Positions 1,977-55,839 of a stretch of 64,000 nucleotides of DNA are shown here, piece by piece. Origin of the DNA: Botryllus schlosseri (lineage: Eukaryota); the NCBI GenBank assembly GCA_051294905.1, contig CM119376.1:24924001-24988000 (forward strand), in the 5' to 3' direction. The notes below the pieces were generated by a model, which was given only the letters and a program-made list of their open reading frames with translations, did not search any database and was not told where the DNA came from. Each line of letters opens with the position of its first letter. Within the stretch, counting starts at the first letter, position 1. Both the position numbers and the translations under genes were made by a program.

Positions 1977-4253
1977 TCGTCCTTGCTTTCCCGCAGAAGT
2001 TTATATCTTGTTGATTCGGGGAGAGATGTTTCCTCTTGTACAAGATGTGGGGTTTTTCGGAAGCTTCAAATTGGTGGGGCAGGTGACTCGGGACCGGTTC
2101 GATTAGAATATCATCCAAGTTTGTACGTAGAAGTCCAGTCTGGAAGATTACGAGAATAACTTCAAAGATGTTATGGGGCAAGAAGGTTTAGGATTGATAT
2201 CCGAAATTTACAGAACAGGCAACTTGGTACGCGACGAAAATGTCGCATTCTTTCCAGTGGAAAGAATTAGTTCATGGCGCTAGCGATGCATACTTTTTTT
2301 AAAATACATTTTCAAGCTACAATACCATTTCAGTATGGCCCGTAAGTACCTCTATAGTTGGAAGTATAGCCAACGACGTAACGTATCTTGTCATTTGCTG
2401 GACAAAAGCTAGGGATAAGGTCACTATTCCCACGCATCTCTCGAGAAAGCGGTTCGCAGTTCAGATCGGTTTACCGATATCAGATACAGATCCTTGCCTG
2501 CGCCTTCGTATGCACCTATGCATACATTCTATGAACGCCACTTCCATTGTATCGTAGATGCGATAAATATTTACAAATATGACCTCAAAGGTCAGTCTCA
2601 AGTGGGCCAAAGTAAATCTGAATCGGATTTTTGCACGTCAATTCTCGATAGAAATTCGCTTGTACTGAGCTTCGCAATACTACACGGCGGTACTGGTGAA
2701 AAAGAGATATCACAGTATACCAGGGTATACCTGTATCTTATAGTTCATTCCGACTCGCAGTATGACGGGTCTCTTAATCAAAATAACAATTATAAATTGC
2801 TGCAAAAACAATGACTTGGTTCATTTAAACTCCTCACCGAATGAGAATTGTATCACAATTGAAATCGGGGACAGAATTAAAGCATATCTTGGCCAATGCA
2901 TGACATTAAGTCTTACTGATTAGTAGGGCGATTTTTTTGACATGTCATAAAAAGTCAAAATTTCGTCAAAATTGTAGCGTTAGGTCAAAAAATGTCAAAA
3001 TTGTTTACGAACTCAAAATTTTTTTGCAACCTGCATTTCGTTTGTATCGTAAATTTTGCACTGAACTTATCATTTCACATTTTATAGCTTGTAGTCGGCT
3101 TTATAGGCCTAACGTTGTAGACGGCCCATTGTCCGCTCATTGTGGATCATAAACATTCAAATGAAACAAATAGGTTGACATGGTGTTATGCTCAACGTAC
3201 CGCAATACCCTAACTGAAGCAAGACTGCGTGGTCATTATATGGTTCTTATAGCAAGAAGCGTATGATGAAAAATTGTGATGTTGACGCCATCGTCAGATG
3301 AAGCAACCCGGTGTGTTACCAGTAGTGTACACACAACGTCTCAGTTGCGTGATGCAACTACTGGAATTCTTCATAGGGCCAGATTTCGTTAAAACTCGTT
3401 TTTTTGTCAGTTGAGTCAAAAAAGTTTTTTCGGGCTAAACTACTTCTTAAGGACAGACAGTTCCAACCCGAAATGAAGATAAGCAGTACAATTCTAACAT
3501 TATGTGGGAAAACACCTAATTTGCATACGTTAGGTCAAAGTTTGGTCAAAATCACGTTTTTCTAGGTCAAAAAATGTCCAAATTTTGATTTTTTAGATCA
3601 AAATCTTCCGTTTTTAAGTCAAAGAATCGCCCTATTGATTAGGTACCCTTGGCTTTCGGTGAAAATTGATTCTATTTAGTAAACCGCACGTTATACTATA
3701 CGCGGAAACCGGAATATAGTTTATTTTCATCTTTACCATCGAGGTGCATAAAACAGGTAATATCAAACTGTAGGGGACGCAAGTGTCAAACTTAAGTCAA
3801 ACTAGAGTTACGCTATGAATGAAAGGTACATTTTAGCGTCAAATCGTACGGTAATCATAATAATCAGTAATTTGGCGCCAATTATTACTTTTCCGTAAAT
3901 GAATTTATCGAAGTCAACTTCCAATCATACGAAAACGCGTACCATTCCTTTACAAGTGCTGATTGCAGCTGTTCCATTGCCATGAGAAATAACTCGGCCG
4001 ATATGGTGGCATCGTACTGACGGTAGCGGTATGTCCTGATAACTTGAGGTCGAATCGCCGTCCATAGTGCGTGAGATTCGCCCGACAAAGAAGTCCCGAC
4101 TAATCAGGTGATTCTCTGCTGGTAGGACCTCGATGTCGAAATCTTCGTCTCGAGAGGACACGGAGAGGAGAAGCGATTTATCGGATTCAGTGTGCGTTTC
4201 AAATTGCGTTCGTGAGGACGGGGTTGATATCTTCGGTACGACAATGTCGAAAT
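1977..4253 (-). CDS. ADAMTS16/18-like: ADAMTS16/18-like metalloprotease, paralog C (partial: two pro-domain exons; gene continues off the left edge)
   Basis: Exon 4253-3943 (cag|AT..ATG|gtacgc) reads DFDIVVPK...RCHHIGRVISHGNGTAAISTCKGM. Exon 2139-1977 (ttccag|..A|gtaagt, 163 bp) reads TGLLRTNLDDILIEPVPSHLPHQFEASEKPHILYKRKHLSPNQQDINFCGKART. Phases are compatible. The second exon has the same length (163 bp) as the gene B exon 48126-47964 and aligns with it. The furin-site/ETLVV exon was not found in 1-1976. Confidence 0.85.
2924..3634. mobile_element. Non-autonomous hAT element (TAGGGCGATT TIRs) in a paralog C intron
   Basis: 10-bp perfect TIR tagggcgatt/aatcgcccta; 8-bp TSD ctgattag/ttgattag; many subterminal GTCAAAA repeats at both ends. 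Confidence 0.85.
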
Positions 4254-4573
4254 CTGCCGCATAATCAACACCAGAATAGAGCGGAATTACGGATTATATT
4301 TGTAGCAAAAATTAAAGGAAAGATTCGTTTTGTCGCGACTCAACGAGGGTTTCGTTACAATTACTGGATCTTGAATCTCAGAATGACTAAAGTAATCGGT
4401 CCAAATATCATAATAATACATAATGATATATAACAATTTTATGTCGAATGTGTAGGTTAAACATATATTGATTGAAATCAAATTCAATCCGGTAGAGACA
4501 CGGAACGGGTCATATCGGTAATTTGTCTTTTTTGCGGGGTAAGGTATAAGGGTAAGCACAATACGGGGTTGAT

Positions 4574-4756: not shown

Positions 4757-6647
4757 AAGTATAGGAGGCGCGTCTTAAAATTATCATTGACTTACAAATA
4801 CTTAACATTGCCGTTTCCCGGCAGCTAGTTTACTCAAATTTCATTTATTCTCGAACAAATGACCGTGTTTCTAAAATCTCAATACTACCGAATTCCCGAA
4901 CTCCCAGTGTCTTCATCATCTTCACTACATTTTTCGGCAGCTATTGTTTTGCGTATATACTATAAATTTTGCGTTCTTGTATGAGTTCTATATATCCCGA
5001 CTATGTGTCTATACACGTAGATAGATCGCATATGGTAGCATTTGGAAACAAGGGACGAACGCTGAGCGATAAATACTTGAATTCGAATGAGAAATATATT
5101 CCATCATCATTTTAACGTGAAATCCGCGACCAGTCACGGTTGTCATTTCTCTGGGGATTTTAATGTCTGAATTTCGCTGATTGCATTCAATAAACACATC
5201 GCAAACAGCAATTAAAGCCCATTCACTACTTTGTCGTGATATTAGGGAAATATTTGCGATTTCTCGAATATAAAGTCGGAAAATCTTCTGGAAACTGATA
5301 CCTGACACCCCACCAACACATTTCCATGCTGGATGAGTCAATCTCATTTATGTATATACTAGCGAGGGTGGAGTTTACAACCGTGCAAAATTAAGGGTCC
5401 GGTCGTATGATACACGTATGGCGCATGCGTGTAGAAATGTATCTACAGAACAGGCATTTTATTGACGCTATTATTTTTATGCTCCAAACAATGCCGCTTT
5501 CTCTTTTCGATTATAGCATGGAATACGTGCTGTAGGTGTATCGTTCATATTCAGCAATCCAATATGAAATGCAAGGCTGGAAAGTAGTTTTTTTACACGT
5601 AACCATGTTGTTTTTTCCTGCTCGCATTGAGGACAAGATTATTCCGTCAAGTCGGGATCGAGACGAATGTTATTGACAAAATCCAATTTTATGAGCTTCT
5701 AGGAAGCACAGAACTACAATACTTAATTGAATAATATATTCATATTGAAATAAACCCGAATATTGTCGGCTGATACTCGTCAGAAGTAATCGTCGGCAAC
5801 TAGCAGAATTGAAATAAATTATATATCAATCGTATTTCCCCGCATCACTACAACTAGAACATCGAATTACTTTTCACCATTTATACTTGACTTCCATTTA
5901 CACCGCAATTCCGCGACGTTGCGAGCGATATGTTTTCTGAATCAGGCAGGCAGTCAACATATTTTCGTTCAACAGAGATTCTCTTTTGTCTGATCCATCT
6001 TGAATGAGGATTCGCGACGTCGGATCCTTGTTGTTTTGTAATTTATCACTGACATGACCCAACTCATAAGTCCAAACAGCAGGAATTTGGGATCTCCAGT
6101 AAATAGGGATTAGATCGACTTTGTATGATTCAGCAAAGGTAAATGCCACAAAACGAGAATGCTGGTATCATCACTCTAGCCGATGAAAAGGAATTCCACT
6201 TTGATCGAAAGATAAGATTAGTACAAGACTCATAATGAAAGTCATTAGTGCATTAGGGAATGGATTCATAAACAAATTATCAAACCTCGTAAATGGGGGT
6301 GGGTCGTCTGCTGCACGAGACGATGAAGGGCTCTGTGTGCATCAGTGTAATGCCTACTGTGAAGCTGTCCATCCGTTTTTGTTGAGAATACCTACCAAAA
6401 GACAATCAATTTTGTTGAAAATTCCATAACCATTGATACCAATCCAGGTAAGATGCCTACACACTTAAACCAACAGCGTGATAACGCGGGATTAACCGCT
6501 AACCTCTCGGATTAACTGTTGATAGACACGCCATAATCCTATACGGTGTATAACTAATACGATAACATTGTGAGTCGTGCGTAACTGCAACATGGGAAAC
6601 ATTGGTTACGGATTATAGTGTTGACAACGGTACATGATATTAATTAC

Positions 6648-7603: not shown

Positions 7604-9916
7604 TAATAATTACAACGTTCTGGCAGGAGAATTTATGAATTATGAACTCATCAAATCTAAACAATTTCTTATTTTAATCTGCAAGCCTGGATTTTAACCG
7701 AGTGTGGTAGGTTCATTCACAAAACCAATGTTAAGACATTTGCGTTATTAGCACGCATATGAAATCTCCGAGAAGTATATCTACGAAGATGATATTTCTA
7801 GTGGATGAACCTTCGGATTACCGTGTTAGTAACAGCTATAAGTTTTTGAAACGACTCGAGAGTTGTGCATTGAATTAATTATTTCTATTCATAATAATCA
7901 GCGTTCATCGACCACACCAAATTTGACATGTTGGTATTGATGTAATCGAATGGAATGAAAACCTCAGAAAGATGAGCTCCGTTTGGCATTTGGCATTGAA
8001 TTACTCGATGGTGAATATTCTTATTGTCCCTGAGCCGCATATTAGTGGAGCACGATATCGACAAAATTGAACCATTGTATTTCAATTTGGATTTGAAAAT
8101 TATATAACTTTCATAGAAGAATTGGATTTGAAAATCGCGAACTAATATTGAAAGTCTATAGTCGCACATGATATTGTTACCAGTGTGAAAGCTCTTACGA
8201 ATTAGCAGGGCGCATATCGTCGTTAGTCCATATGGTGAGTAATTTATCCACTTTCCAAGCTAATACCATAACATCGATGACCAGACCATTAAGAAATACT
8301 TCTACCGCCACATCATCGCTGATTGTTTCTTGAGAATTTTAGTCTTATAATCCTAGCGGCGAATAGTCATTTGACATTGACTGGTAGGGAAATCAATTTT
8401 CAAATATTCACACACAGCAGATTCGACAAGTTTGAATCGATTGTAAACTCGAATAGTATTGATATTAATAAAACAGTTTCATCCGCACTTTCTCGATGAA
8501 TTCATACGGCAATTAACGCCACCATAGTTCCACACAAGAGATGTCAACACATCTTGCGCTAGACGAAAAGTTAAATTATATTCCCTGTGACAAGGCATCT
8601 CAATTGAGGGTTGCAATTGCGCCACAGCCGACCGCTACGGTTCTGCATTGCGAATCGAATATATATCCTGTTACCGATATTACCAATACTACAATATTTT
8701 TCGCGTGCGTGCTTGTTGCATTCAAGGATACTTAAAACTATCCTAGCTATCCCAGGTAGCAATACGCTTACGTTTATCGTGCGTGTAAGACCCAGCTAAG
8801 ATTCGATATCACCTGTTCCTTAACGCCTAAAGTCGACGTATAATGACCAGAGAGGTCGCACAAAATTTACGAAAAGCGCCGATGAGTTAGTTAGTTAGTT
8901 CAAATACTGGCATATACTCACTGTTTTTATTAGGACGGCAATCACTAATCCCGAAAATTTGAAGGATTCCTTTCGCATGATGAGCAATTCATCTAGCTCG
9001 GATGCATTACCAAAAAAACTACGCTAAATATAGGTATGGCTATTTGATCGCTAAACAGGCAAACAAAATGCATATCATGCACCCTGGTACTAGTAGGTCA
9101 CGATCTTTTTTATACAATTTCACGTCCTTTGTTTCTCGCACCGAATCATAAGTGCTGTTATCCGGGCGGTTCACTCCAAATTTGACAAATACGCGAGAAA
9201 CGCTCTCTCATCACATTCACTGCGGGCTGTTCTAGTTCAGCGGATGAGGGAGGAAAGTCAACCCAAGTCGCGTTTCTTTGTGAAGCGAAACTCCCCGCCC
9301 GTGAAATGATCAACAGTCAGCATGCTGTGACATGTATTGGGCCATCGACGCAGATCATAAGGGAAGTCACCAGTGCTTCAAAACAAAACCGTAATTCTGC
9401 TATTACGTCATCACGAAACTCGGCCTATCTGTGCTGCAATCACACACCCAGCAGTCAATCCGATTCCTCCACTAATTCACCACAGTTAGGCAACTGGAAA
9501 ATATTCGGCTTTTGCAAAATGCATTAGAATTAGAATGATAGCTACGCATACACATATTTCTAAAATAGATTGGAATAACAATTAAGGAATTCGCAAAAAC
9601 TTTCGGATCATCAAGAAATACAACAAAATGAAGAATACCATTCATAACAAATCAGAGATCATTCTAAGAAGCTTGAGCTTGGGAACTGTATGCAGAGTAC
9701 GTACAGCATCGAGTTTGACTCGTTTCGCATTGTACAGTTCTCCTATATCAGTTTAAGAAAAGGACAGAAATTTAATAAGAATAAAAATTACAGCATAGAA
9801 ACATTGCCCCAATTAGATTAAAATTAGATTACCGGCTTCGCTCTAATTACTCTATTTAAATTAATAGAATTATCTAGTGGTCCAAGTCCGTAATTCAGTA
9901 GCCGGTAGAGCTCAAC

Positions 9917-10137
9917 TCGACCCTGCTCCATGGCATCTGGTTATATTGACATCATCCACCCTGATTTCCCGTATATTAGCGTGCCTTTTGTTCTGTCTGA
10001 AGGGCGGGCCTCTTTCCTTGAAAATCAAGGTCGCGAACCTTGCTTCAAACAAGAGATGAACATCGATGAATGAGATGCTACGTACTAGCAACGCGATGAC
10101 ATATAGAAAAGGGTGCGCGCGTCTCAAATTAATTCAT
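9917..10137 (-). CDS. Candidate 5' (signal peptide) exon(s) of paralog C; frame from the ATG needs a 1-nt correction
   Basis: Hydrophobic stretch LRRAHPFLYVIALL is followed by a phase-0 gtacgt donor (10085). A possible 69-bp intron follows, then a 100-nt phase 0-to-1 exon (10016-9917), the same length as gene A exon 2. The ATG at 10137 is out of frame by 1 nt. Confidence 0.3.
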
Positions 10138-11490
10138 AGAGAACCTCTAACGAGTACTTTCCGGCTCTCTTCTGAGTAGCGAACCCGGAGGTGTTTTACA
10201 TCGCACTGCTTGACTTCATAATAATACGGACACATCCCCCTTCAAGCCACCATGTTGCGATACCTGAGTAAGTGTTTACTGTTTCCTGGCTGTTCGTGCC
10301 CCTGAAAATCCGGGTAATCCCGACTTGCAAGTGCGGCGCGATTATGTAGCGCCACGCTTGTCTGCTATACTGTCTAACCATACAAACGTGTATTTGCACT
10401 TCCAATTCGCGCCTGCGATCAAAGAAATTTTAGGCGTAACCACCTCTACGCATCTACGTTATGATTCTGCACTGCTTGAGGTTTTATAATTTTCTGCTCG
10501 CTGCAAAACACAGTATTTGTGTTTCTACCAAGTCTCCCGTTGCTGTTCTATATTATAGGATTACGAACGGCGTTTTGGGTTTATAAACAATTTAGATCGA
10601 TTTGACCTGTCAGCGGTTTCCTGCTGATATTCCGAAAATCTTCAATACAAAGCTAAAGATTTTAATGATATTATTATTGCATAGCCATAGGCACAGTACG
10701 TCAGTAGGCTATGGAAAAGCTAAAAGACAGATATGACGCTCCTCGTTGCAAATATAGCTTCTGAGGGAATCAATCGATGGCGAGGAAGAGATAACCAGTC
10801 TGGAAAAAACTTTAAATTGGCCTGAAAAATTATCATTCTAATCATCACGAAGGTCTCGCCTCGCGCAATCTATTGCCGTGACTCATCATCAGCTCGCGGA
10901 GGTTAATCTACTCGGGTGTGACCCGATTGCTCTGGTCGGTTTCCGAATGACCTCAAATTCGTAGATATGTCACGGAGTCGCGAGGATCGCATCAACGTGA
11001 AAGACAGTAACGGCGAGAGATCGTTGCGGGCAGATATCGCAAACGTGATCGTATCGATTGCGCTATTCTAGCAGAATATCGAAACGTGAGATGTCACAAA
11101 CGGAACGCCAAATAAGCGTAACTTACATTGGGCGAATGCGTGTAGTGCTATCTCGATTGATGGCGCAAGGGAGTTGCGGATAGCAGAAAATACGGCTCAG
11201 ATTCAACAACAAAATCGCATCACAGGCACTCGTACACTTCGGTATTTTCAAATCCATATGTAATTTCGACGCACGTACAGTACAATCGTCACAATCCAAT
11301 CCTTGCTTGAATCGATGTCCTGTTCGATTGAAGACAAAGATTGTAATTCTTTTCACCGCATGTGGTAAGACTTTGTTACGCCAAAGGGCTAATTTCCTGG
11401 GTAATGGAGTCCAACAAACTGCGCGACATTGGAATGTTGATCTGAAATGGATAATTATGGAAGCTGTTAATGGTGCCTACGGTGGGGAAT

Positions 11491-12731
11491 TAGGGTTAGT
11501 TCGGATATCAATAATTTTCACTATCTGGATAACGGATATATCCGGATATTTGAAAGTTAGCTAACCGGTTAACCGGATAATGAATGCTAAGTGAGATAAT
11601 CGATTTCACGAGGTCTGCATGAAAAATGGATCGCAAAATCATTACACAGTGTTACGGTAGATTTATAGGTACACGCGCAGTACGAGCGAGAATACGAGAA
11701 AAATCGCGCAAATTTAATGTTCACTGCTTCTGCAACTTCCTCCTTATAAAGTACACTACATCAATAGTGGTATCCTGTAGCCGGAACCGGAGATTTGTAA
11801 CAAAGAGTCCACACGTATTAAATGCCCTTTCTGTTTCCACTAAATGGGCTGAATATAGTAAGCAGCGCTTCCTTTTTGCCTATTCTTCTGTTTTGGTGTC
11901 CAGTACTGGAAGGACGAGTAGCTGATACTGGAATTGAGGCCGACATGATAGCTCGCTCTAATTCCTCCATGGGAAATTCACATGATCAGGCCCGTAGCCA
12001 GCCGAAAAATAAGTGGGGGTGGGTGTTTGAAATAAAACGAGGGGTGTTTTAAATAAAACGAGGGGGTTTCGATTTTTTTCGAATTTAGTATCAGCGGAAA
12101 TCAATTACGCTTGCACGCACGAACATGTTTGCGAAATGCGAACATTCGATGTCATTCAGTTTCGCGATGTCACTCATTAATCACAATCGCGGATCATAAT
12201 AGTCTTAGCGGCATATTGTCTCCAAGCCACCAAGAGATAGGTGCCAACGCATGCCTGGCCCGAGACTCGATGGTTACGCCAGCGATGATATCGTTCGTAC
12301 CATGCCTTTTGCAGATGCGATTGTGTAGGCCAGCGATAATATCGTGGACCAGTGATGGTATAAAGTCCACGGAGCCTATTGCAGATGTGATTCTGCCAGC
12401 GGAACTATAGGCTTGTTGAAGACTCGAAAAATCAGGCCAGCAACGATAGTCGAGTTCGCAGCAATCAATGATCTAATTTGGCGATCTTCTCAGCGGGAGA
12501 TTGCGTCGCGTTACACACTGCATTGACGTATCTCGCTAATTGGCGACACGCTTCTCGCTGATTGGCCGCGCGCAACACTGATAATACGACTTATTGAAGC
12601 TTCCTAAAAGTGTAAAACGCAATATTAACGATACTATTTTATCCGGTCAACCGGCAGATTTATATCCGGATATCGGATAATAAAAAACCTGCGGTTAACC
12701 TGTTAACCGTTATCCTGATAATCCAACCCTA
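11491..12731. mobile_element. Degenerate hAT-like element with TAGGGTT ends
   Basis: Ends tagggtt...aacccta; subterminal CCGGATA / ACCGGTTAACCGG arrays at both ends; TSD only approximate. Contains an orphan CAGGCCCGTAGCCAG TIR at 11987. Confidence 0.6.
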
Positions 12732-13512
12732 GTGGTGATGCGATCCGGACTTGGGCGCATTGATGAGAGATCAGTTTTTTGTTTCGTATGTACCGTCGAG
12801 GGGGTTTTGTCGATGGGGCTACGAAACAGCATTTTGGTAAGGTTATCAAGTCTACGCCACCATTTTAGCATACATCTCGCTGCTGACGGACGACGCACCG
12901 ATTGCCACGCTATTGTTTCACAATTTCCATTTCTTCGTGTGCATTGCTCGTGGGTTTGTTGTGTTCATCAATCATACAAGCCAGTGTGCGTCGTTCCTTG
13001 TACTGTGCGTATATGACACCAGTATTCGTTCCGTGCGCCAGCTTATTGGCATGGATGTACGAAATCTGACTTGATACGAGCATGGTTTGAGATTTTGACA
13101 TGAATACCATCGTAAAGATATTGGTTTGATTATTATATTAGAACTGGATTGGCCATTTTCGAGTTAGGATCGTTCTGAATTGGTACCCGAAGTTGAACTA
13201 TTCCCAGATGTAAACTTTGATCGCGACACGCCGGCGTTAGCAGTAAGCATAATATATCATCATCATTTCTATTTGGAATTCGATTTGAAACTTGTATAAG
13301 GAACGGCAATGTGATTTTAAAATATTAAATACTCTCATTTCGTCTCCTTGGCTATAGAACAGGGGTGGACAAACTTTTGAGCTCGCGGGCCGCATTCAAC
13401 ATCTGAGTCCATTCACGGGCCGCACTATATAAAATTGGGATATAAACCAAAACACAATATTGGAATTTGATTATATAGCGAGGACATGGATATAGTCTAT
13501 ATATGCTTATTT

Positions 13513-13660
13513 TAGGGTTACCATACGTCCAAACCAACCAAACATTGCTTTGACGAAATCGTACACGCGTCAGAAACCGTGGCAAGACTTTATAGGCTGG
13601 TCGACCCTAAAAACCAATTTGTCAAAACTATAGGGATAAAAGTCGGTTGTCCCGATTCTT
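13513..13660. mobile_element. Fragment of a hAT Blackjack/Tip100-like element end
   Basis: Starts TAGGGTTACCATACGTCC, followed by gtcccgatt motifs; no partner end found. Confidence 0.4.
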
Positions 13661-13828
13661 AGAAAAGGGGTTGAAATTTAAATCAGTGACCAGATATCTC
13701 TTCATAGTTTTGCTAATTCCACTTTTGGGTCAGTTCCAGGACACACAATGCTGACATCATCAAACCCTGCTAGCTTCAAACACGCTTCTACTATGTGTAG
13801 ATAAATTAGAAATAGCCTACTTTTACGC

Positions 13829-14591
13829 CAGGTGTGCTGGTCAACCTTTTGGCCATTCACGGCCGCATTTCGACTACTCATGTAGCGTAAGGCCGCATTC
13901 CTGGGCTTATTCGTAAAGAACGAGCTGGGCGTCAAATACCATGTTACAGTGTCTATGCCTATTTCCGGTTAACTCCGGATTAGTCTATTTAATGACATAG
14001 GCTTACGATATACGAACCTAAATCTCGGGTGGGTAGTGGAAATGGCACGGAACTGTTTTTTCAGATTCACCAATGAATTTCGTCATTATTATCAGTATAT
14101 AGTTTTACATATTACTATTAGACTTTAACCTTTCTCGGCCCATGTGATCAGATTCACCGGTAGAGTTGATGAAGGGGGTGTTTTCGAGAATTTAGGGCAA
14201 GTTATAAATTATGATGCATCTCCGGGTGGGCCAATCGCTGTTAGTCACTTTGTTGCAAGCTGCTATTTCTTGATCTGCCACCAGGATCGCCGGCATAGTG
14301 AGGAGCACACGATTCCGAGTTGGTATTTCTATAAGAGGTGCATCATTTTCCTCTGCCTTTCGCATCTTTGTGGGGCTCTGATGGCAAAAAGCGCTACTAT
14401 ATTAAAATCGAAAAAGGAAGTGAAATTGAATCGCGCGAAGAAAATTTCAAGACTTATTAATATATTTCAAGAAATTGGGAGTCAATTCGTAAATTCAAAT
14501 TGCATGTCGACGGCCGCCAATACATACTAATTGAATTGCGTGTCCACGGCCGGACAAATTTACTTCCACGGCCGCAGGTTGGACACCCCTG
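13829..14591. mobile_element. Buster-type MITE nested inside the 13360-14991 element
   Basis: Imperfect TIR caggtgtgctggtcaacc/ggttggacacccctg; perfect TSD ttttacgc. Confidence 0.85.
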
Positions 14592-15093
14592 TTTTACGCA
14601 TACAGAGAACGAATCTATACCTAATACTGCCGCATATCGTTTTCTCCAAGCACAGCACTAAAATTAATAAACGTTGCTGGAGTGGTTAATCTGAAATCAC
14701 ACTCGTGATCCGAATTATATCAATCCCGTTAAGGATTTCTGTGATGTTTAGCAGTTCAAACCTTTCAAAATGCGTGGGCCTTGAAGTCGGGCTGTCGCGC
14801 CAGAAATTATACATAAAATATAATATAGGAAGTATTTACCTTAGAATTAACATGGTAAAATATATTAAAAAAAGTTTAAGTAAGTCCCTGTAAATTTTTA
14901 GTACGCAATTTATCAACATTTTTAATAAGTTTCTTGAGACTCTCGCGTTCCGCACAAAACGGTGCTGCGGGCCGTAGTTTGCCCACTCCTGCTATAGAAG
15001 ATGACAATATTAATTTACGCTGGTATGATTTTCTCTATAATGTAAACAATACACCCAGAACCGAGATGTTCGTCGGTAAGGGACGGTATGGAG

Positions 15094-15398
15094 GAGTGGT
15101 TCTCAAACTGGGGGGCACCCCCCATCCCTTCGGGGTCGTGAAAGCATCTGAAGGTGGCGCGAAGCTGCGGTCAACTGAAAAAAATTCGCGTTCCGCGCAA
15201 TTTACCTCGAATTCATAGTTATTGCTCCGAATTTCATACTAGAGAACTATCTCATCAACACTCATAACTTTTCATTCCATCAAACTGTCAATTTGGATTG
15301 CCAGCATTCTGGATGCATTTTGTGATATGACGATAAGGGGCGCGACATTTTTTACTATCATAAAGGGAGGCGTGTCTAAAAAAGTTTGAGAAACACTG
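15094..15398. mobile_element. Charlie-like MITE (305 bp)
   Basis: TIR gagtggttctcaaac/gtttgagaaacactg; TSD gtatggag/gtatagag. Confidence 0.8.
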
Positions 15399-15519
15399 GT
15401 ATAGAGAAACCTGTACACCTGCTTCATTTTTGTCACCTGGTGGAATCGTTCGAATCGGTAATGGCATTGTCACACTCACATTTCGTGATTTCCAACTCAG
15501 GTTTACAGGAACCTTAAGG

Positions 15520-27560: not shown

Positions 27561-27675
27561 CTGTTCAAAAGAGGACTTAGTTAATTGTAGAGGACAACAT
27601 CGGAATTACAGGCGATTTTCAGAATTGAAGTGTCAAGTATATCTTGTGGATTATTGGTGTTTCATCGCGTGTATC

Positions 27676-38389: not shown

Positions 38390-38651
38390 ACTATTCAATC
38401 TGCGTTTACGTCAGCATTGGGACGTATATCTGCGTCCATGATTGAAGCGATATGAGTCCCGATTCGTGTCGCGCGTATCTGATCTTCGTCGTATATCGTG
38501 AATGAGTGGGATTTTGTCTGTGCCGCTCAGCACAGTGTATATGTGTCCCTTACCGCGTGTTGCGTCCGCGTTGGTCGCTTTGTCCAAGTGATTTGATCGA
38601 ACATGTGAACGGGTAGCCGTGTAAACACTTGACAATGTCTGCGCTTCTATT

Positions 38652-38657
38652 AATAAA
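38652..38657 (+). terminator. Putative polyadenylation signal AATAAA for paralog A
   Basis: Canonical AATAAA about 260 nt after the stop codon. Confidence 0.5.
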
Positions 38658-39561
38658 AATATATGGACTCTTGCCAAGACGGTAGCCTGATATAAACATA
38701 GCAGGGGTCGCCGATTTGTCTCGACAAATTCGTTGTGTATTCGAATGATGCGACGCCTTCGCCCTTCCCCTTCATTTCCACGAAGTGCACCAACGGTCAG
38801 ATGGGATATCTAGTTGTGACTTGGGATATTGCGGTTACGGATATCAAAGACTGCGAACAAAACCAACAAATATACTTTAGATAACAAAATCGGATGTTCG
38901 CGAGGATATAGTAAATATTTGCATGCAAACTTATGCATGCTTTGTTCTCTCTTTGCGCAACACATCAAACTGTCTGCACGGGTCTTCGAGGAAGACCACC
39001 GGTCAGATTCTGTTATTCAGGTTTCTTGTTTCGTATGTAGCCCTTTATTCGTACTTCGCGTTGTGAACCATGAGGTGGCATTATCCAGTAATATATTCAA
39101 GTTGCAAAGTGTGATCGCTGTGCAGAAAACAATGTTACTTTAATTAACAAGATTTACCATCACCAGGTCTTGAATTGCAGGTTTGTGAACTCGACAAACT
39201 ACACTATCACACCTAGAAAAATATTTTGATTAAACGTAGCCGCAAATGTCAGTTTAATGGCCTTTGATGGTCCGCGGAGTAATTACATACCGGTGTTTGC
39301 GCAAACTCACTTATCACCAGTGTGTTTGACGCATGGCCTGCAATAACTTTTGCGGGATTATAGAAGACTCAAGTGGCACAACATAGGAAAGTAATATCGC
39401 TTGACCACATCAGACTCACGTGATTTACCACAATTTGTACTATAGTGGCTTATGTACCATATGGTGTCTGAAGTGGCTACATATCAGCCGGGTATCATTC
39501 TGAAGACGCTATGATATATATAGATAACTTCACCACATCTCATATAACTCATTTTGATGAT

Positions 39562-39567
39562 TTTATT
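39562..39567 (-). terminator. Possible polyadenylation signal for paralog B
   Basis: AATAAA on the minus strand about 890 nt past the stop codon. Another candidate lies near 39044. Confidence 0.3.
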
Positions 39568-40455
39568 GAAAAATACTAAAACTTGGCGGTATTAAAAATC
39601 ATACTGCAGCATAAATAACATAAAATAGGAGAAAATATCAATAACATTAAATAAACGAGTCACAGTGCTGGTAACGTTGTAGAGTCAGTGCAGACAACGG
39701 ATGCACCGACTGGTATATTCTTTAAAAGCGTAAGAAATATCTGGCATATTAGAAATTCGAGGCACACGAGCGCAGTGAATATAGCATCGCTTCTCAATAC
39801 AACACAAACGAAATGGCACTTCAACATTCAGTGACGCTCTCGCTCAGCAAGAACGTCCAGTTATTTGATCTTCGTAATGTTATCCTTGTTGTTCATTTTT
39901 CATGGAGTTCTGACTAGGATGATCACTAACACCGGGCGTATTATACCCTCATTTCATCTTACCACGCCCTTACTTTGGTTCTAAGCTTTGCAAGACACTG
40001 GCTTGGGCAGCCGAGATAGACCTAATCATACAGGTATTACAGAGCAGGACATTACATCCGTAAAGTGTCGTTAGTATCAAAACCACAGTACTCGATTTAC
40101 CCGTTCACAGCATAGTTTGGAAAAAGGTACGCGGCAAATCTCCTGCACTATTTGAAGATAGGTACAGAACTTAATAAATTTTCACCAATTTAAAATAAAT
40201 ATGTGAGCCGCGAAGGCAAGCAGTGTTATATGAACAGCCGTAACCGCTGTATTTACGAGCGGTACGTAAACCATGCCACCAGGGCTATGGAACTGATAGG
40301 CGCTTCTATCGTGCGAGTGATATCAATCTACATCCATCTGTATTGGCTTCATACTGGTTTCGGATTGCTTTCTTCGACAAACCGAGGACCTTCAGACATT
40401 CACCAACGATGCGCGAAAGGGCATTCTCAAGCATTCGGACTCGAAGGCGTCTCCT

Positions 40456-43400
40456 TCACCGGCCTTGGCAAGATTTGCAACATTGCGCTCCGAAGAACTT
40501 GTGCGAGCACTGGTTGTGCTGCGGCACCAAACCGCACCATTTGTACTTATCCACGCACGGGGCATCGTCTGTAGAGAGTAAATACGATACGTGACCGATC
40601 GGAAAAGCGCACACACAGTAACGCGACTGTGCAAACAACGGCATTGTAAAAGACTTACCATTGTCGGGATTTATTGGGCATTCGTTGGTATTACACGACC
40701 GCTCCGATCCTGGCTTCGCCATTCCGCTGCACAGTTGCGGAGACCTGGAGATTTTTCCGCCGACCATGCATCGTACGAATCTGCTTTGCTGGCCGCCTCC
40801 GCAAGTAGCCGTACACTGCAGGAAAAAATATGTTTTTGGTTTCGTGCCAGTGGTGAATACCACCTTGAATTTTACCTCAGTCCAAGGGGCTGTAATCCAC
40901 CTAGGCGCAGTCGTAGACGGTCTATTACGGCTTGATTTCAAATGGTGGTGACGCGTGATATGTCGCGATGGTGCGGAGGTTGTAGTCGTAACGGGTTCTG
41001 TGGTTGTTGTAGTTGTGGTTGTAGTTGTAGAGCACCGCCTGAGGTGACAGCTTTTGGTGAGAGATATCTTCGGCTTGGGCGTACGCCTGCACTTTCTGGG
41101 GTTTACGGATTTGTAGCGGCCGTAAACGTTTTTGAAAGTACATCTTAATTGCCGTGATTGCGTGCCCTCTCCGCATTTACTGGAGCACTAAAGAGACGAT
41201 GATAACATTTAAGTACATAAAAACGATCCGATTAGTTTAATTATACCCTTACCCGACTCCAAGATGTAATGAACCACTGGAACCGTTTAGGACAGTACGC
41301 TACTACGCACGATTTCCGCGCGTGTGGTTTCGAGTCAACTCCGCAAACACTGTCGTCTTCTCTACGCAGCCCGCTTCTGCATGCAACAACCCGAGTGCGG
41401 TATCCACGACCACAAGATCGGGAACACTGAAACCGTAAATACTTGGCATAAACACACGATTTATATTAAACAGGTGTGATAGTAACTAACCTGTGACCAT
41501 TGCGTGGTTCGCCATCTTGCTGGACATTCGTCCTTCGCGCATATTTGGCTGCGACGCGGTTTATGGCTTAAATCGCACTGGTTGGGCGAAACGTATTCTT
41601 CTCCCGACGCTGTTATCCTACGGCAAGTCACACGTCTCGTTTGTAAACCGCCGCCGCAAGTCCGACTGCATTTACTCCAATCTTCCATATGCCACCTGGC
41701 ATCAAACGAAAGTTATATAATGCTTGTTGATTAACGCGTGTTACTAATAACTTACTTCGCAGGGCACGGTCCTGGGTTACAAGGAACAGCTGATGTTTCC
41801 GGTTTAGGTTCAGCGCATGACTCGTCATCCACAACACGCCCTTGGTCTTCTACGCACACATATTCAATGCGTCGGAGACCTTCATCATAATTTCGAAGTT
41901 AATATCACAGAAATTGAGGGCATATAATTACGCATGAAAACCATTACCTCCTGCGCAAGATTTCGAGCATTCTGATTTCTTTGCTTTCCAGCTATAGGTG
42001 TGCGGTGGCTCTGTAGTTTCGTAAGGCAGTGCGTTGTTGAGTTCGTGCGTCGCGTACGAATATGAAATCCCGGGATTCTCTCTAACTATCAAAGCCTGTA
42101 AAATAAAACCTACATTCAGCAATCAATATTTCCGCGAGATCAAAGTATTTCGTTACCTCTATTACAATATCCTCAGTCAAGGGACCATCGGACTGCAATA
42201 TTTCGCTACGTAATGCCTGACGTTTGTACTCCCATTTCGCGCCAGCGAAGTTCACGTCTCCGTACAAGTTGACGCGCCAGTTCCCGTTCAGATAGTATCT
42301 GATGAATCGAAAGTATAGCCATGCGTTAGCAATGAGTTTAACCGGTACAAATTCCATCAACAAATTACCTAGTCGGACTTGACGCGCTCCTTACTGCTAT
42401 GTACGTGTGCGTGCAGCATTCCTCTTCCCACACTTTAACAGCGGTTGCACCTGCCGGGATCCGTGTGACTTTGTAGTAGCCTTGAAAGGGAAGGATTAAG
42501 TTATTACTCTGCCTTTACCCGTCTGTGTAATCTGCAATTTCGTACTCACCACTGTCTTCCACCGTGTCTCTAAATGCCCCGTTAACAAATTGACACGTCG
42601 AATTATCTCCGTTGCAAACTCCACAAGCATCGACTGACGCGTTCGAGTTCAGTACATTGTCGCACCCGACACGCTAAACAGCAAATTTGAAATGTTAAGA
42701 ACTTGTCACAAATTTGACGCAGCAACACTTTACTCACAACGCACTGCCCCGCGATGCAAACGTCGTTCGATTCCCCGTCGCAAGACGTCCCGTCAACTAC
42801 CTGCGCGGCAAGACGGTCGAAAAACGCGTACCCTTCCGCCTCGCAGAGCAATTCGCATCTGTTCAAGTCTAAACAGAGAAACCCTGTTAATAACAAAGAC
42901 TTGATATGATGATTCCTTCTCTTACCATATTTCCAGTATTTCTTGTACGGAACCCAGCTGAAATACTGTTTTCTGTATGGTTTTCCGTTGAACTCAGCGC
43001 ATTGTTGAGCTCTGAAATCGACTGCAGACGCGGGGCATGCTTGCGTGCCGCACAGCTCGTAAACGGTATCGTCTCCATCACAATATCTGCCACCGTATCT
43101 CGGCGATGGACTGTTACACTGCCGCTTTCGCTGTCTCACGCCACCGCCGCATGTTCTAGTACAAGCCGACCACGAATCAAAATCGGACCAGCCTCCGTTT
43201 ACCGCGGTCGGCCCGGATGAGCTTCGTGACACACATTCTCCCCGTCTACACCACTGCGAATTGAAATAAAGAGTATGAGACATTCAAATTTTGCGTGTTT
43301 CGATAAAGTCGTACCATATTTCTGCCGCATTCAGTCCCTTCTGCGGCCGGCATAAATTTGGTTTCGCAGACACCGTTGCTTCGTTGACACCACAACGCTT

Positions 43401-46400
43401 TACATACTGTATGCCGCTGCAAAATTCAACACACAATTCAACGCTGTTGTACGTGAAGAGCTTCTTGAACGTACAGAACTTCACTATACAGTTGAATAAT
43501 ATATTCATATTGACATGTCAATATATTATGCTATTATACTGGAAAGTAAAATATGCGTAACTTACTTGACGCCCCATGTGTCTGAAAAAACACACGTCGA
43601 CACCTTTGCCGAATTGCATTACGCATTGCTCCCGCGCGCTGTATAACTCTCCAGGTAGTTTCTCTCTATTTACGGGGCTGCCGGCGGACAAAGCGGCTGG
43701 CGACTGATTGCCGTCATCCAAACAACTAGAATGCGCAGATCTAAAGCAAGATTACAGCTGTTAAATTCATGCTCATACGCTCTTACCTATAGGCGTGTGA
43801 CTCCCTTACCTTAAAAATTGCTGCATCGCCTTGCGACTGCATGAGGACCAGGTGAATACTCCGTTGTGGGTGTTGAGCGTCGGGGACATGAGATGCCCGT
43901 CCCTTTTACTGCATAAGTTCCCTTGGCTATCATGGCTCATTCCGAAGCTGTGAGAGCAACGCGTATTGACTCAATGATGAAATAAAGCCGGTTGTAACAT
44001 ATTAGGCGGCATAGGCGCCAACCATCTCAGAGGAGGTGTTTATTTTCTCGCTCCGATACCATTCTATGGTACACCTTTTGGTTCTTATTTACACATTTCC
44101 TCTGTTAAATCCATAACAAAGCAATATTTACACTTTAAAACGCTCTTTTCAAAATCACATAAATTGTAGCGAAGATCAAAACCGCGCACGAGAACGGCTT
44201 TCGACACATTTGGCATCTAAAATCAAAGGCCGGTTGCCGAGCGCACAATCGCAAATACGCGAGACTTGTTTTCATTATCACAAAAGATCGGGGCATCTAC
44301 CTGTGTCCGGTTTCATGGGCGACTGTGAAAGCCAACCCGAGGCCCATATCTTCGTTAATCGTGCAGCTGTCGGATTTACTACACATGCCGCCGATTTGCG
44401 CCAAACCTGAAATCACAGAATCAATGCATTTAAAAACACTGCCATTGATCACGTCACCAGGTTGTTCATTACCGAGAGTGTCACAGGGTCTGTTTTGGTT
44501 GATGCAGATATCAATTCCCGTTAATAAAATAGAATGGTCCGGTTTCCGCCCGGTCGAAGTGTTCGATTTAGATTGCCAATGACAGAAGTTTGACAATGAC
44601 TTGTCCGCGCGGTGCGAAAGCCTAAGCTCCTGCAAATGAATAATAAGCTGGAAACTGACATGCTGTATACTACAATTCAACCTCTATTAAATCACCATCA
44701 CTTTCACGACGGTATCACTATTACGTCATAATTTACAATGAGCGAATTCAGTACCTTGTCGTCTTCAAGCAGCTTAATCCCGATTAGAGAAATCTCAACA
44801 TCGCTATCCAAAGTTCCATCTTTAAATAGACTTGTCACCTGCAATAAATTGTACGCGTTAAGACGAAATACCCGGGCCGGCTATGCCGACTGATACTTGT
44901 CAGTATTCAATGCGGGCCGATCGCAAAGTCGCTCAAAATTCGTGAAATACCGCAGTAGGCGGTCTCGTATCAGCAGGATAAATACCATACCATCAACACG
45001 ACCTATTAGTGATGAATAGTACAAGTCCACTAAGGCAGAATGCGGAATGTTTCCGTGATGAATCCAAATATTCAAAGACAGCGTGATACACAACCGCATT
45101 CCTATCCCTAAAGAGGAGGGCCGATATTGTCTTTAAGCGACAGCCCGGTATTTTCGCTGGAATGCTAGAATGCTAGAATTGAAAACTCCTTCATTGTGTC
45201 GCGGAATCAGGAAACCATGTTTGTGATGGGATCATTATGCGACTTGTACACGCCCCGTGGGTCGTTTTGGATGTGATGCAGGAGACATGACCGCCCGTAT
45301 TCCTTTTCCGAGTGTTCTATTTTAAGACTCAGTGTGAATGGACATGGATGCCATAAGCCTATTGAGAAGTTCTGTAACGATGCGATATTTAGGAGCTGTT
45401 TTCTCCGATTTTCTATTGCTTGCCTGTTACGAGCCTCGGACTATACACAGGTACGGTAGCGTAATTGTTAGAGTTGTATTCATTCAATAAAATTAGAAGC
45501 GTCGAGCAGGCGCCTTTTGCAATCCCCGCTGTGACTTTGGCATCCAACAGATGCATGAGTCAGCGGCGCGGGGTGGCGTGGACGCGTAATTGCTTTGCGA
45601 GACTTTGCCCGCTCCGAGCACGCAGCCACTCACTCAGCCTATGGTAAATTGCGATTGACGGTACCGGGAGTAGTTGTTGAAATAATATCAATTCAGCATT
45701 CAGAGTAATTTTCACGGGGACTTAAACCGGAGCATTTGCGCCGTAATGGTGTTTGAAATTTGTCCGTCCGCATACACGTAGGACCGTAGGTTGTCAGTAA
45801 CGAAGAACTTCTACTTCAGTCGATCTTCCACTATTGCTTACTCGGGTGAATATAATATTCGACTTCTTTTACTTATACTAAACAGTTTACGAGATGATAT
45901 TGATAGCGGTGGGGCGCTGTACCGAGTCGATATCAATAAATTTGACGCATGCTGAATAAGATTCTGCCTTGTCCTAAAGCAGAATAAATCATGAAACTGA
46001 CCATGTTCATAACGGTGAGAATATAAGTGGTGACGTCGACTCTGTCTCTCTCGTGGTTCCTGACCAATTGGCTGTCGGCAACCACCAGAGTTTCCACAAT
46101 CCTTTTCCGCCTGCCACCCGGCCCGTCGGCAGCGGACCTCTTTGATCTGTGCGTCTCGGAGTTTGCGACGTCCAGCCCCGCGCTCTTTTCATACTCGTGT
46201 TCGACTTGATCGCGCGATTTGAGCACAATAGCGCCGTCCGACAAGTGCCGAATTTGGGCGTCGAGATCAGACGATATCGCCGTTGGATCTGCAATTAGAG
46301 GATGGGAAATGATTGCCTACAGGTCAGATAATCCGTGCCGGGATCAAAGAAACCGGGCTTGCTCCGGTGGCTACATAAAGCGCTCGGGCTAACCGCAAAT

Positions 46401-49400
46401 TTAATGGCGCCGCGATCAAGGCGATGATGTACTCGGCGGCATGTCGCTACTGTATACGAGACATTTCTGATAGATACGCCTGGATATATAATAAGGATGA
46501 TGATGGTTAATGAATCTCAAAATTCAGGCAATTTACCAAATGTCGCTACGGTCCACGCGATTCCCACACTATCAGCTCTACAAGTGGGTGCGCGGGTGGA
46601 CAGTTCGTGTATATATAGGTGTGAAATGATTGCGTGAATTCCAAATTGAGTTCAACGATTTTTTAGCTAATTGCTAACCGATTGCACGCCGTCCATTACT
46701 TTATCATAAATCACACGGCAATGTGTGACGGGATCAGATTGGCCAAACACGAGCTCCTATAATCTTGTCGCGTGAGTCATATTTCAAACAATCATCAGGG
46801 GCGTAAAGTGCCGAATTCAAATCGGGTTGTGTTTGTACTATTTAATGGTAATCCGCATTGACCATGCTCGAAGGGCCGAGATTTACAGCATTTGTCTGCA
46901 CTGTCTTATCACACGTACAACACCAAAGAGAGCGACTTTCCCGTTCAACCCACTATGCCGAAGAAGTAGGGCTTTAGGTTAGAGTGCAGTTGATTATGAG
47001 AATCTATTCGATATCCATAGTAGCCACCCATTTTCCCACAGTCGCATATAGTAAGCACCGTACTATTGATCCGAGATAATATTGTATTTACAAATAATCA
47101 CATATATGACCGACCGCGGTCGGAATGGTAGCGGTGTTTACGCTACCACGCCGTATTTATGAATCAGAACTTGTGTGGATATCCCAAACATGATCGATAT
47201 CAGTTCACATGCCATGCAAATCTCGTTCAAGTGCCTTAGGGTGCTGCGTTACCTTTCCCATGGCTTATATTGATTCAAAACATGGTGGTATATTTGATTT
47301 ACCCACGCGTTTGCAAACTATAGCTGTCGCTAAAGAAAGATCCGGTTTATCTTAGAGGCACTTCCTCTAAAACCACTACAGAACGGTGTTGTGTCTACTC
47401 AAAACTGAATAAGCCGCGACACCACAGTAGTTACCCGGGCGAAGGTCGCGAACATGTCTTATTATCCTGTTGACAAACTACGAACCGCAGTATAGCGCGC
47501 TGTTGCAAGTCACAACACGGCCAAAAAGCGAGGTGTTAGGTTTTCGGACTACCTGCATCATCTGTCATTGGTTGCATTGTTCTGCGGTGTATCGTGGTAA
47601 ACTACACTACCCGTGAGACTATCCCCGTTCAACTGAGACTGTGTGCATCATTCCTAATGACAGGTGACGTGTCGACTGTATCGTAATAATGACGACGAAA
47701 ATAGATTGAATAGAATATCGCGCTGAAATCAAACCCTCGGTAAATGAAGCGCTGTCGAATTTAGAACAAACGGAGCAATGTCGGCGTCTTTGATCATCCT
47801 GTATCTTACATATCACAGCCTGTCGTTTATATCCGTTTACGGGCTGAGCTAAACCAAAGAGCCAACTAATAATATCACACTATGGTCAATCGCTACAAAT
47901 TCCACTACTCTACAATGCGGTTTATCGGTTGCTGCATAAGCTAGTAACTTATTTTCAACTCACGTCTTTTCTGCTTGCCGCAATAATGTAATTTTCGTTT
48001 GCCGTTTCCCAGATGCTTCCTTTTGTATACAATATGTGGTCTTTGCGGTTCGGGAAAATCGTGGTTCAAATCGTCCGAAATTGGCTCGATGATGAAATCA
48101 TCATCCCCAGTTCTCAACAATCCAGACTAAAAAAAATGCACATACTGTAAGATTTGGCATGAGTGCTAATATGTGGTAGGCATAGCTTGTCCACACCCCC
48201 ATTACCTTGAGACATCTATTCTCGGACATACAAGCGCGAATTATAGCATATTCTTATTGAAATACGGTAAAAAGTACCCGTACGTTTCATATTTACTCTG
48301 TGCACTGTGTAGTCTCAGGTGTTTCACCGACTCCACCATCTTCGTAAATGATAATGATAGACGTACAAACGCCGGGGAAAGAACAAGGCTTACGTTTAGT
48401 TTGTTTATTCGAGAAAGCATCACAAATTTCAATATCGTCCTTCTCTCCCATGGGAAGAATGCGCGATTGCTTATTATTGCGATTAACGGCTATTCCCACT
48501 TGAAGTCACGTACATTCAGGCTTTGTTAGTGAAATACATCCTACGACAATGGGTGGTCCTGCGCAGGTGCATCGGAATTACGACGCTTCAGAGCTCAGTG
48601 CCAAAGATATAAATCCACTGTCCGCATGTGTGATGTCATAGAATACGGTATCCTGATGAAATCAGATCTATGATACCGATACGCTCTAAACTTAGCTACC
48701 GTTCAGGTTCGACATAGAGTTCTTGCGATGATCTCACCGCCAGACAAGCAGTCTATTGTGACCGAATCATTGCCATAATCTTAAAACCGCTGTTGCCTAA
48801 TAACAGGATTCTTTTGTGTCTCGCATTGTGTTATGTTTATCCTGTCAGACGGAGTCATCAGTCACCCGAAAAATGACGGCGCTCCGCCCGCGGTTTTGGA
48901 ACTACATCGCCGACAAACAACCACAAACAGCGGTCTCGTACTTTGGGTAATAGTCTCTGAGTGTAAAACCCACTCGTGCACGACGTTGATACATTCCGCG
49001 AAAGATGTAAACTGAAAAAGCTTATTGAAATATGATGGTGTTTGGGGTGCCGATTCAGAGAATGTATCGGTGTGACAAGCCTTACTCATTCGCTAAATTG
49101 GAGCCTGGGGTAGTCATCGGTAAGCGTGTAACATATAGGCCTGACAAGCACACGAACAAAGCATTTCCAGTTTCCGAATAACCTCTTGCCCGCAATTAGA
49201 TCAGATTACGAGCGGGAGAAATCGCAAAAATCTCTACCTCCGATGCATTTTCTTCGAGTGATTCATATTTCGTTAAAAAATAGTTTTCAAGCTACCCGCA
49301 TGTTTGCAATTTAGATTACATAATGTTACGCATTTGATAGCATTACTCACCAGGCCACCACTGCACAGGCTGACTCCGGCCGTTCTGTTTTCGTGTGAAA

Positions 49401-50744
49401 CCATACGCGCTTCGTAGTGACAATCCAGTCCGATCGTGCGTTCGGGTATCTCCTCAATTTCTCCAGTTTCGGTGCTACGCCGTACCCGTTGCACGGAAAA
49501 GCTGGGTGATATCAACGAACTGGGGTCTCCCAGGAACAGGCGAAAGTCTTGACCGTGTGCTTTGAGTCCTAGTAACAGATTTGGCGGCCCGTCCGCACTG
49601 CGGCGAGCACGTTTGTGGGTCAATGAGTGAGAAACGTGAGCCCCGTTGAGATCCAAAATTTCCGGAATGGTGATATCGAAATCTAAAATATGTTAATGCG
49701 GTATGTTAGGTTACGTGTAACTCATATACCTGACGTCACTATAACTACGAATTATCTAGACTTTATATTGTGCGATAATCCTCATTCAGCGTCATAGCGC
49801 GCGAAAAGCTAACGCTTTACGTGTTGTATAAACCAGACAACGTACAACAACGACATATTGTAGTAACAGGAATGATAATTTTGTCGATCTTTCGAAACGA
49901 CTTCCCGCAAAGCGTAATCCATCGAAAGCGCTCAATTTTACAGATAATTCAACCGCATTATTCCCACCTTCTAAGTGACCGTGTGTTGTACTCCGGACCA
50001 GCCGATGCAAGGTGTGGTGAGACTCGGTGTAATGCGATTTGGAACCAGCCAAAGCGCGACCTTCAATCTGAAATTAAATGAAACAGCCTTTACTTCCGGA
50101 TAATTAACACTTCCATTACCTACGCTGCGTAAATTACAGCTTTTCTCAACCGGGATAGTCTGCTGTGGTACAGCGCGAATCACGTTTGGACAGAGTGCCC
50201 ATCCGATTAATCTCAAGAGGATATCATTTCAGCTGTAATTGCGGTTTGGATGTGGCGGCCCGGTTATGATTACCGTACTTTCAAGTCGTGCACCTGCGGT
50301 TTCTGGACGCACAATGGAAGCAGTGTGCGCCGTTTCGATCGGACAAACACAGGCTCTCGGGACAATTTCATATTTCGCGGCTTTAAATACACAATCAATA
50401 TCCGTCTACTATTAGCAGCCAGAGCCACGCCGGCGTAGTACTACGTTACCAATAAATAGCGGCAGCCGAGCGAACGAAAATACACGGGATTCACTCTCGA
50501 TGCTGTCTGGCCCGAAGCGTAAAAAGTAGAAAGTAGACGATGCGTCTGGCATTACGAAGCTGCTATTTTTAAAATCTGACCGTATCGATGCACTGCATCG
50601 ATTTGAATATTTCGAATGCGTGATTAGCAGGACATATAGGTCAAATTCAATACCGCGGTAACAACTACAAAGCCGATTACTTACCAAACTAAATTGTAAC
50701 AGCACCATAATAAATACGATCCCCGATCGCCAAGAGTTTTGCAT
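40456..50744 (-). CDS. ADAMTS16/18-like: ADAMTS16/18-like secreted zinc metalloprotease, paralog B (~23 exons, ~1238 aa); closest of the three to vertebrate ADAMTS16/18
   Basis: Exons 5'->3': 50744-50685, (50162-50120 tentative), 49682-49351, 48126-47964, 46288-46002, 44838-44755, 44629-44473, 44406-44301, 43947-43810, 43740-43566, 43416-43315, 43253-42926, 42868-42738, 42673-42550, 42480-42369, 42298-42157, 42095-41948, 41879-41756, 41695-41491, 41426-41253, 41187-40876, 40815-40659, 40568-40456. Motifs: signal [79 protein letters not shown] and [28 protein letters not shown]. Several of these (e.g. the pro-domain, [12 protein letters not shown] and PLAC motifs) match the ADAMTS16/18 clade. 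Confidence 0.93.
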
Positions 50745-55754: not shown

Positions 55755-55839
55755 CATTAGATGCTGAATTGACCTGTCGTTCACCTTATCCAACCTTTTC
55801 AATATCCATCCCATGATCCTAATAACTCCAAATAGATGA

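Follow-up and report, generated by a model that had tools for sequence, protein, structure and literature searches.

The window analyzed here, a stretch of 64,000 nucleotides of the Botryllus schlosseri genome (G000:C6:24924001-24988000; assembly of 495.5 Mb in 219 contigs), carries a local cluster of three ADAMTS protease genes, which we call C, A and B in their order along the DNA and which lie on the minus, plus and minus strand, respectively. Base composition is about 42% G+C and runs of N are absent. In a preliminary description of this DNA, three separate genes in these orientations had been proposed, and both the exon matches of a six-frame self-comparison and the Pfam domains bear this out. 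The exon matches form two colinear series, one pairing 28.8-38.4 kb on the plus strand (gene A) with 50.1-40.5 kb on the minus strand (gene B), the other, shorter, pairing 6.4-2.0 kb on the minus strand (gene C) with the 5′ part of gene B. On the exons of the three genes, Pfam recognizes Pep_M12B_propep, Reprolysin, TSP_1, ADAMTS_spacer1, TSP1_ADAMTS and PLAC; for gene A the matches comprise TSP_1, the spacer, TSP1_ADAMTS and PLAC, and for gene B the propeptide, Reprolysin, TSP_1, TSP1_ADAMTS and PLAC.

The three genes and the exons of gene C that lie inside the window are the following:

27676-38389, plus strand: coding region of gene A, 24 exons, 1193 amino acids (spliced alignment to ADAMTS18 and to B)
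50744-40456, minus strand: coding region of gene B, 23 exons, 1255 amino acids (ATG at 50744, stop codon at 40456-40458)
8978 to window position -13652 (G000:C6:24910349), minus strand: coding region of gene C, 24 exons, 1240 amino acids
8922-8978, minus strand: gene C exon 1 (E1), signal peptide, from manual 5′ modelling
6286-6391, minus strand: gene C exon 2 (E2)
3943-4253, minus strand: gene C exon 3 (E3), propeptide
1977-2139, minus strand: gene C exon 4 (E4), 163 bp

Gene C could be extended leftward to completion, as had been proposed: besides the four exons inside the window, the other 20 (E5-E24) lie up to 13.65 kb beyond its left edge, are colinear, include the PLAC exon and carry matches to TSP_1, TSP1_ADAMTS and PLAC. 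Because gene C extends past the left edge, the whole cluster spans about 64.4 kb. The limits first given for the cluster correspond to the end of the 163-bp exon of C (1977) and to the ATG of B (50744). No fourth copy was found within 40 kb to the left or 10 kb to the right of the window, and scanning the 495-Mb genome with ADAMTS18 and with the spacer and PLAC models recovered no additional close copy of A, B or C.

Gene models and exon structure

The models were obtained with a custom protein-to-genome dynamic-programming aligner (GT-AG introns, all three phases), guided first by gecko ADAMTS18 and afterwards by the paralogs themselves, and the 5′ ends were modelled manually. All introns are of the GT-AG type (68 of 68) and the three reading frames contain no internal stop. 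Intron positions and phases agree across A, B and C with two exceptions: one intron, which divides a 213+115/118-bp exon pair in the other genes, has been lost in B, and the phase is shifted by 1 nt at intron 4 of A. The spliced models agree with the exon sizes that had been reported as common to A and B (84/157/106/138/131/124/142 bp) and reveal the same sizes in C, the 157-bp exon of A and B making use of the upstream AG of a NAGNAG acceptor. Likewise, the 163-bp exon said to be shared by B and C is found at 47964-48126 and 1977-2139, and A and B have a 100-bp second exon in common. With gene B, the spliced alignment of ADAMTS18 is colinear from residue 64 to residue 1227 of 1232.

Regarding the 5′ ends, the three genes have the same structure, namely a signal-peptide exon of 45-60 nt, an exon of 100-106 nt and a large propeptide exon in phase 1, all with strong splice sites. 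This two-exon 5′ structure was given by the open reading frame (ORF) at 50744 in gene B, which has a clear signal peptide start and ends on GTAAGT. Signal-peptide exons corresponding to hydrophobic ORFs in intron 2 of B and C, or to an in-exon ATG in A, were rejected, a weak donor being forced in B. These short hydrophobic ORFs, which start with ATG and end on a GT donor, lie in intron 2, at 49821-49856 in gene B and at 6200-6245 in gene C (MTFIMSLVLILSFDQ). The ORF of C is in frame with exon 3; for that of B, this requires a weaker donor, GTTAGC, situated 7 nt further on. Both could represent alternative first exons, or chance. For B and C, the aligner also placed small exons between exons 4 and 5, which were discarded as artefacts.

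The sole odd feature of the models is the following intron:

29410-29447, plus strand: predicted intron 4 of gene A, 38 nt, GT..AG

Every other intron measures at least 52 nt, and retention of this one would break the reading frame.

Several introns harbor repeats. In gene C, short interspersed repeats occupy 1-129 and 2907-3000; their scored copies number in the dozens and are spread over many chromosomes, at 80-97% identity. Intron 20 of gene A contains, at 36400-37200, a young interspersed repeat with about 3000 candidate copies genome-wide (95-99% identity over about 170 bp). RNA contigs reach depths in the thousands over this repeat and show many loose ends; the repeat probably represents the end of an active or recently active transposon.

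Domain organization of the predicted proteins

The elements referred to in this section are as follows:

30565-30661, plus strand: zinc-binding motif of gene A, HEIGHSLGIAHD, split by intron 8
43929-44317, minus strand: zinc-binding motif of gene B, 12 residues, split by intron 8
38268-38389, plus strand: last exon of gene A, PLAC (PF08686, 38.6 bits)
40456-40568, minus strand: last exon of gene B, PLAC (PF08686, 41.9 bits; own-genome scan)
40906-41034, minus strand: threonine-rich (Thr-rich), mucin-like linker between TSR5 and TSR6 of gene B, an insertion relative to ADAMTS18 that is kept in the mRNA

In the three proteins, a signal peptide was assigned from the hydrophobic first exon. The propeptide model PF01562 scores 48 bits in B and stays under the cut-off in A and C (21.4 and 13.8 bits, respectively); the prodomains of all three align with that of ADAMTS18, including the Cys-switch CG and the RxKR motif. 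Basic furin-type sites stand directly before the conserved start of the catalytic domain, (I/V)ETLVV(A/V)D, in all three proteins. All three proteins keep the zinc motif HExxHxxGxxHD intact, the Met-turn (V/L/I-M-S) is encoded in exon 9, and Reprolysin (PF01421) was matched on an exon of B. Further downstream, the disintegrin-like, central TSR, Cys-rich and spacer regions are colinear with ADAMTS18, with TSP_1 and ADAMTS_spacer1 matches on the exons. A motif scan recovered six TSR cores in both B and C, at positions matching those of three ADAMTS18 sequences; in A it recovered five, to which the central CSKTCG is to be added, with a TSP_1 match on the exon of the latter. PLAC is C-terminal in all three proteins, which stop shortly past it and lack EGF, transmembrane and cytoplasmic parts. 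Each protein possesses 72-73 cysteines. An AlphaFold2 model of the TSR1/Cys-rich piece reached a mean pLDDT (predicted local distance difference test) of 43.6, and placement in a protein atlas returned only generic TSR/ADAMTS-like clusters.

Transcription and allelic variation

RNA evidence was collected for positions 36400-42399, where A and B converge, from Logan contigs (two runs belonging to two studies) and from raw reads, the Logan contigs being taken as RNA because they are spliced. All the splice junctions in this region were matched to the base, i.e., three in the last four exons of A and eight in the last nine exons of B. The junctions of A (37701/37774, 38001/38062 and 38191/38268) were found in spliced RNA contigs of two runs and in raw RNA reads, and all eight of B, between 42369 and 40568, in spliced RNA contigs; three of these junctions were also seen in the raw reads of a 2026 RNA-seq run. 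The longest contig of B, 4792 nt, represents approximately the full mRNA, and the 312-bp linker exon (40876-41187) is unbroken in the RNA contigs. These data also delineate the 3′ untranslated regions:

38390-38808, plus strand: 3′ untranslated region of gene A, minimum extent (RNA contigs to 38662 and 38808, possibly 39187)
39585-40455, minus strand: 3′ untranslated region of gene B (RNA contigs unbroken from 40568 down to 39585/39633)

The two genes are hence convergent, with transcript 3′ ends about 0.4-0.8 kb apart. Contig depth is 37-39 for B vs 7-9 for A, figures which serve as a rough guide to expression only. The cluster is at least partly expressed. Moreover, 15 of the 23 coding differences listed between alleles of B are synonymous, as expected under purifying selection. 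Five of the eight non-synonymous ones fall in or beside the Thr-rich linker.

Phylogeny and clade assignment

The whole-genome ADAMTS18 scan uncovered four further ADAMTS loci, all of which were modelled:

G000:C5:12097400-12104600: ADAMTS locus with five TSRs and PLAC
C8:12282000-12293100: ADAMTS locus with a Thr/Pro-rich tract among its TSRs
C9:14835600-14851900: ADAMTS locus
C14:8127000-8149100: ADAMTS locus

A maximum-likelihood tree (LG+C20, 1120 columns, 18 rows) was computed from A, B and C together with seven vertebrate ADAMTS18, these four paralogs, three starfish ADAMTS6/10-like proteins and one snail protein. A, B and C are monophyletic (support 100/100) and, with ADAMTS18 as the vertebrate clade sampled, sister to its seven sequences (100/98), the four other paralogs and the starfish and snail proteins falling outside this grouping. 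The approximately unbiased (AU) test rejects a tree in which B joins ADAMTS18 apart from A and C (delta lnL 77.6, p-AU 1e-123), as well as, more weakly, one in which the locus on contig C5, the next-closest paralog of this genome, joins ADAMTS18 (delta lnL 15.4, p 0.022). Branch lengths differ, that of A being the longest (1.42 substitutions per site vs 0.5 for B). Pairwise identity amounts to 45.4% for A-B, 41.7% for A-C and 48.4% for B-C, to 39.4%, 45% and 42.7% between ADAMTS18 and A, B and C, respectively, and to 33-40% between these three and the four other loci of the genome.

Six TSRs together with PLAC mark the ADAMTS16/18 clade apart from 6/10 and 17/19. The tree, the AU tests and the TSR count thus support a placement of A, B and C in the ADAMTS16/18 clade, and, within the sampling of the tree, all three in the same clade, in line with the preliminary description. 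In a homologue search queried with a partial lizard ADAMTS18, the 120 matches listed were all vertebrate ADAMTS18, with no ADAMTS16 and no tunicate sequence among them. Among the best 150 matches to the TSR1/Cys-rich exon of B, most were multi-TSR proteins and one was an ADAMTS, a starfish 6-like protein. An alignment of a starfish scaffold with the exons of the window gave five matches, one of which was this lizard ADAMTS18, and a 226-amino-acid ORF gave none.

Taken together, we read the locus as a cluster of three intact paralogs which would encode secreted zinc metalloproteases of the ADAMTS16/18 clade and would have arisen by local duplication with one inversion after the tunicate/vertebrate split, a reading to which we assign a probability of about 0.85. 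Several points weigh against it, and they are considered here with the explanations that they would favor. One is that the RNA support is limited to the last four exons of A and the last nine of B, so that the 38-nt intron of A and the whole of gene C lie outside it. One or two copies, i.e., A with its short intron or C, might be decaying or non-functional, and the branch of A, the longest of the three, and the 1-nt phase shift of its intron relative to B and C point in the same direction. However, a dead copy this diverged would show stops or frameshifts, while A and C keep 24 in-frame exons, all catalytic residues, their cysteines and all domains; for A, two independent studies and raw reads also show transcription with correct splicing at the 3′ end. 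With 48% identity to B and an intact ORF of 24 exons, gene C does not qualify as a haplotig, nor is it an obvious pseudogene. We hence regard decay of either copy as improbable.

The composition of the tree is another such point, since vertebrate ADAMTS16, 6/10, 17/19 and 7/12 and other tunicates are not part of it and the clade call is made from ADAMTS18, the paralogs of the same genome and the domain count. A, B and C could accordingly belong to another PLAC-bearing clade (6/10, 17/19 or 7/12) and owe their resemblance to 16/18 to ADAMTS18 being the lone vertebrate reference. Furthermore, the AU test against the C5 locus is only moderately strong, and ADAMTS18 is 42.3% identical to this locus, level with C and above A; because this value falls within the range of A, B and C, raw identity is insufficient to settle the clade. 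Nevertheless, the six TSR cores at ADAMTS18 positions set the three genes apart from the C5 locus, whose five TSRs and PLAC we take to be the 6/10-type count. Alignment scores with ADAMTS18 are also higher for A, B and C (2014-2453) than for C5 (1899), the tree and the AU test favor their grouping with ADAMTS18, and the C8 locus, with its Thr/Pro-rich tract, is a better candidate for a 7/12-like gene. Membership in another clade appears slightly less probable still than decay.

Least probable of these explanations is an origin of the three copies before tunicates and vertebrates separated, for instance with B as the orthologue of ADAMTS18 and A or C as that of ADAMTS16, an ancestral chordate cluster having dispersed in vertebrates: the divergence between the paralogs (42-48% identity), comparable to that between B and vertebrate ADAMTS18, and the position of ADAMTS16 outside the sample would suit it, but it runs against the monophyly of A, B and C, the cost of detaching B from the two others and the single Ciona gene that published trees place as sister to vertebrate 16 and 18.

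Origin and possible roles of the cluster

Under the favored reading of a post-split local expansion, a single ancestral 16/18-type gene would have given rise to three. That the duplications postdate the split from the vertebrate line is supported by the monophyly of A, B and C and by the rejection of B alone with ADAMTS18. They are also old, as seen from the 42-48% identity between the copies and from branches measuring 0.5 to 1.4 substitutions per site. The lineage-specific expansion put forward in the preliminary description can hence be retained as regards its timing relative to vertebrates, and finds no support here as regards specificity to the species or family. The triplet could be shared by a large group of ascidians, Ciona branching earlier or having lost copies.

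Regarding the mode of action, by analogy with the family, the products would be made with a signal peptide and a Cys-switch prodomain and would be activated by furin-type cleavage just ahead of the catalytic domain. They would then cut extracellular-matrix substrates at the HExxHxxGxxHD zinc site backed by the Met-turn, while the disintegrin-like, TSR, Cys-rich, spacer, five C-terminal TSR and PLAC modules would ensure targeting.

Of the three copies, B evolves most slowly and predominates in the sampled RNA contigs, and A is the most diverged; a division of labor among the three genes is predicted and likely. A more detailed scenario, rather doubtful in our view, is that the triplication took place in the stolidobranch/colonial-ascidian lineage and supplied distinct matrix-turnover jobs (tunic, extracorporeal vasculature, weekly budding and resorption), B keeping the ancestral role and the fast-evolving A and C acquiring new substrates or cell types. 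The specialized roles in tunic, budding and metamorphosis suggested earlier are pure conjecture.

ADAMTS16 and ADAMTS18 are "orphan" proteases whose substrates are poorly known, and they have been linked to disorders of the human eye, kidney and reproductive system. Three diverged copies in a 64-kb cluster of an invertebrate chordate constitute a natural experiment on the constraints acting on such an enzyme and on the division of expression between paralogs. We found no paper describing an ADAMTS expansion in botryllids. A, B and C are previously undescribed members of a known protease family, and the term "undescribed system" applied to them before was overstated: this is a paralog cluster of a well-known family, a routine expansion and no new kind of system, which merits annotation as an ordinary gene-family expansion.

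Surrounding sequence

The remainder of the window (9000-27600 and 50800-64000) contains neither long open frames nor paralog matches, although genes with short exons would escape detection; the 18.7 kb separating C from A, like the 13 kb to the right of B, appear gene-poor. Between C and A, a 592-bp unit is present twice at 23036-24333, with 100% identity in all frames; it was either duplicated in tandem very recently or is an artefact of assembly. Rfam families have no match within the window. Elsewhere in the genome, weak spacer/PLAC matches occur at 17.33 and 17.45 Mb on contig C10 and at 2.17 Mb on C16, and may correspond to ADAMTS-like or papilin genes.

Comparison with known ADAMTS genes

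The four other ADAMTS genes of this genome (contigs C5, C8, C9 and C14) belong to the same family and have the same core domains as A, B and C. They differ in lying outside the A/B/C clade, at the low identity given above, and, for C5, in the number of TSRs (five vs six).

With vertebrate ADAMTS18, A, B and C share the order of signal peptide, prodomain, Reprolysin, disintegrin-like, TSR1, Cys-rich, spacer, five TSRs and PLAC, and they are colinear with it nearly throughout, at 39-45% identity and with similar lengths (1193-1255 vs about 1220-1250 amino acids). By contrast, the linker between TSR5 and TSR6 is longer in B and C, and Thr-rich in B, and the prodomain of the three proteins is shorter ahead of the Cys-switch. 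Vertebrate ADAMTS16 and ADAMTS18 cleave fibronectin. They have also been described as weak aggrecanases (PMC4448532). As the preliminary description had stated, the two vertebrate genes are unlinked, the human ones being located on different chromosomes, at 5p15 and 16q23 (PMC549037, PMC1867822, PMC4448532), whereas three genes are clustered here.

The nearest described gene is expected to be ADAMTSb of Ciona intestinalis, or "Ciona ADAMTS16" (Huxley-Jones 2005, 2007; Nicholson 2005), the tunicate co-orthologue of vertebrate ADAMTS16 and ADAMTS18, which we compare through its published description. The literature agrees with the earlier statement that invertebrate chordates have about one co-orthologue per clade: in Ciona, each clade is represented by one of six ADAMTS genes, and ADAMTS16 and 18 together have one sister gene (PMC549037, PMC1867822, PMC4448532). 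Because published trees give the single Ciona gene this position, the ADAMTS16/18 split would have occurred within vertebrates. Where Ciona is reported to have one gene, B. schlosseri has three, that is, two extra copies, and the triplet revises the view, based on Ciona alone, that tunicates have a single gene in each clade.

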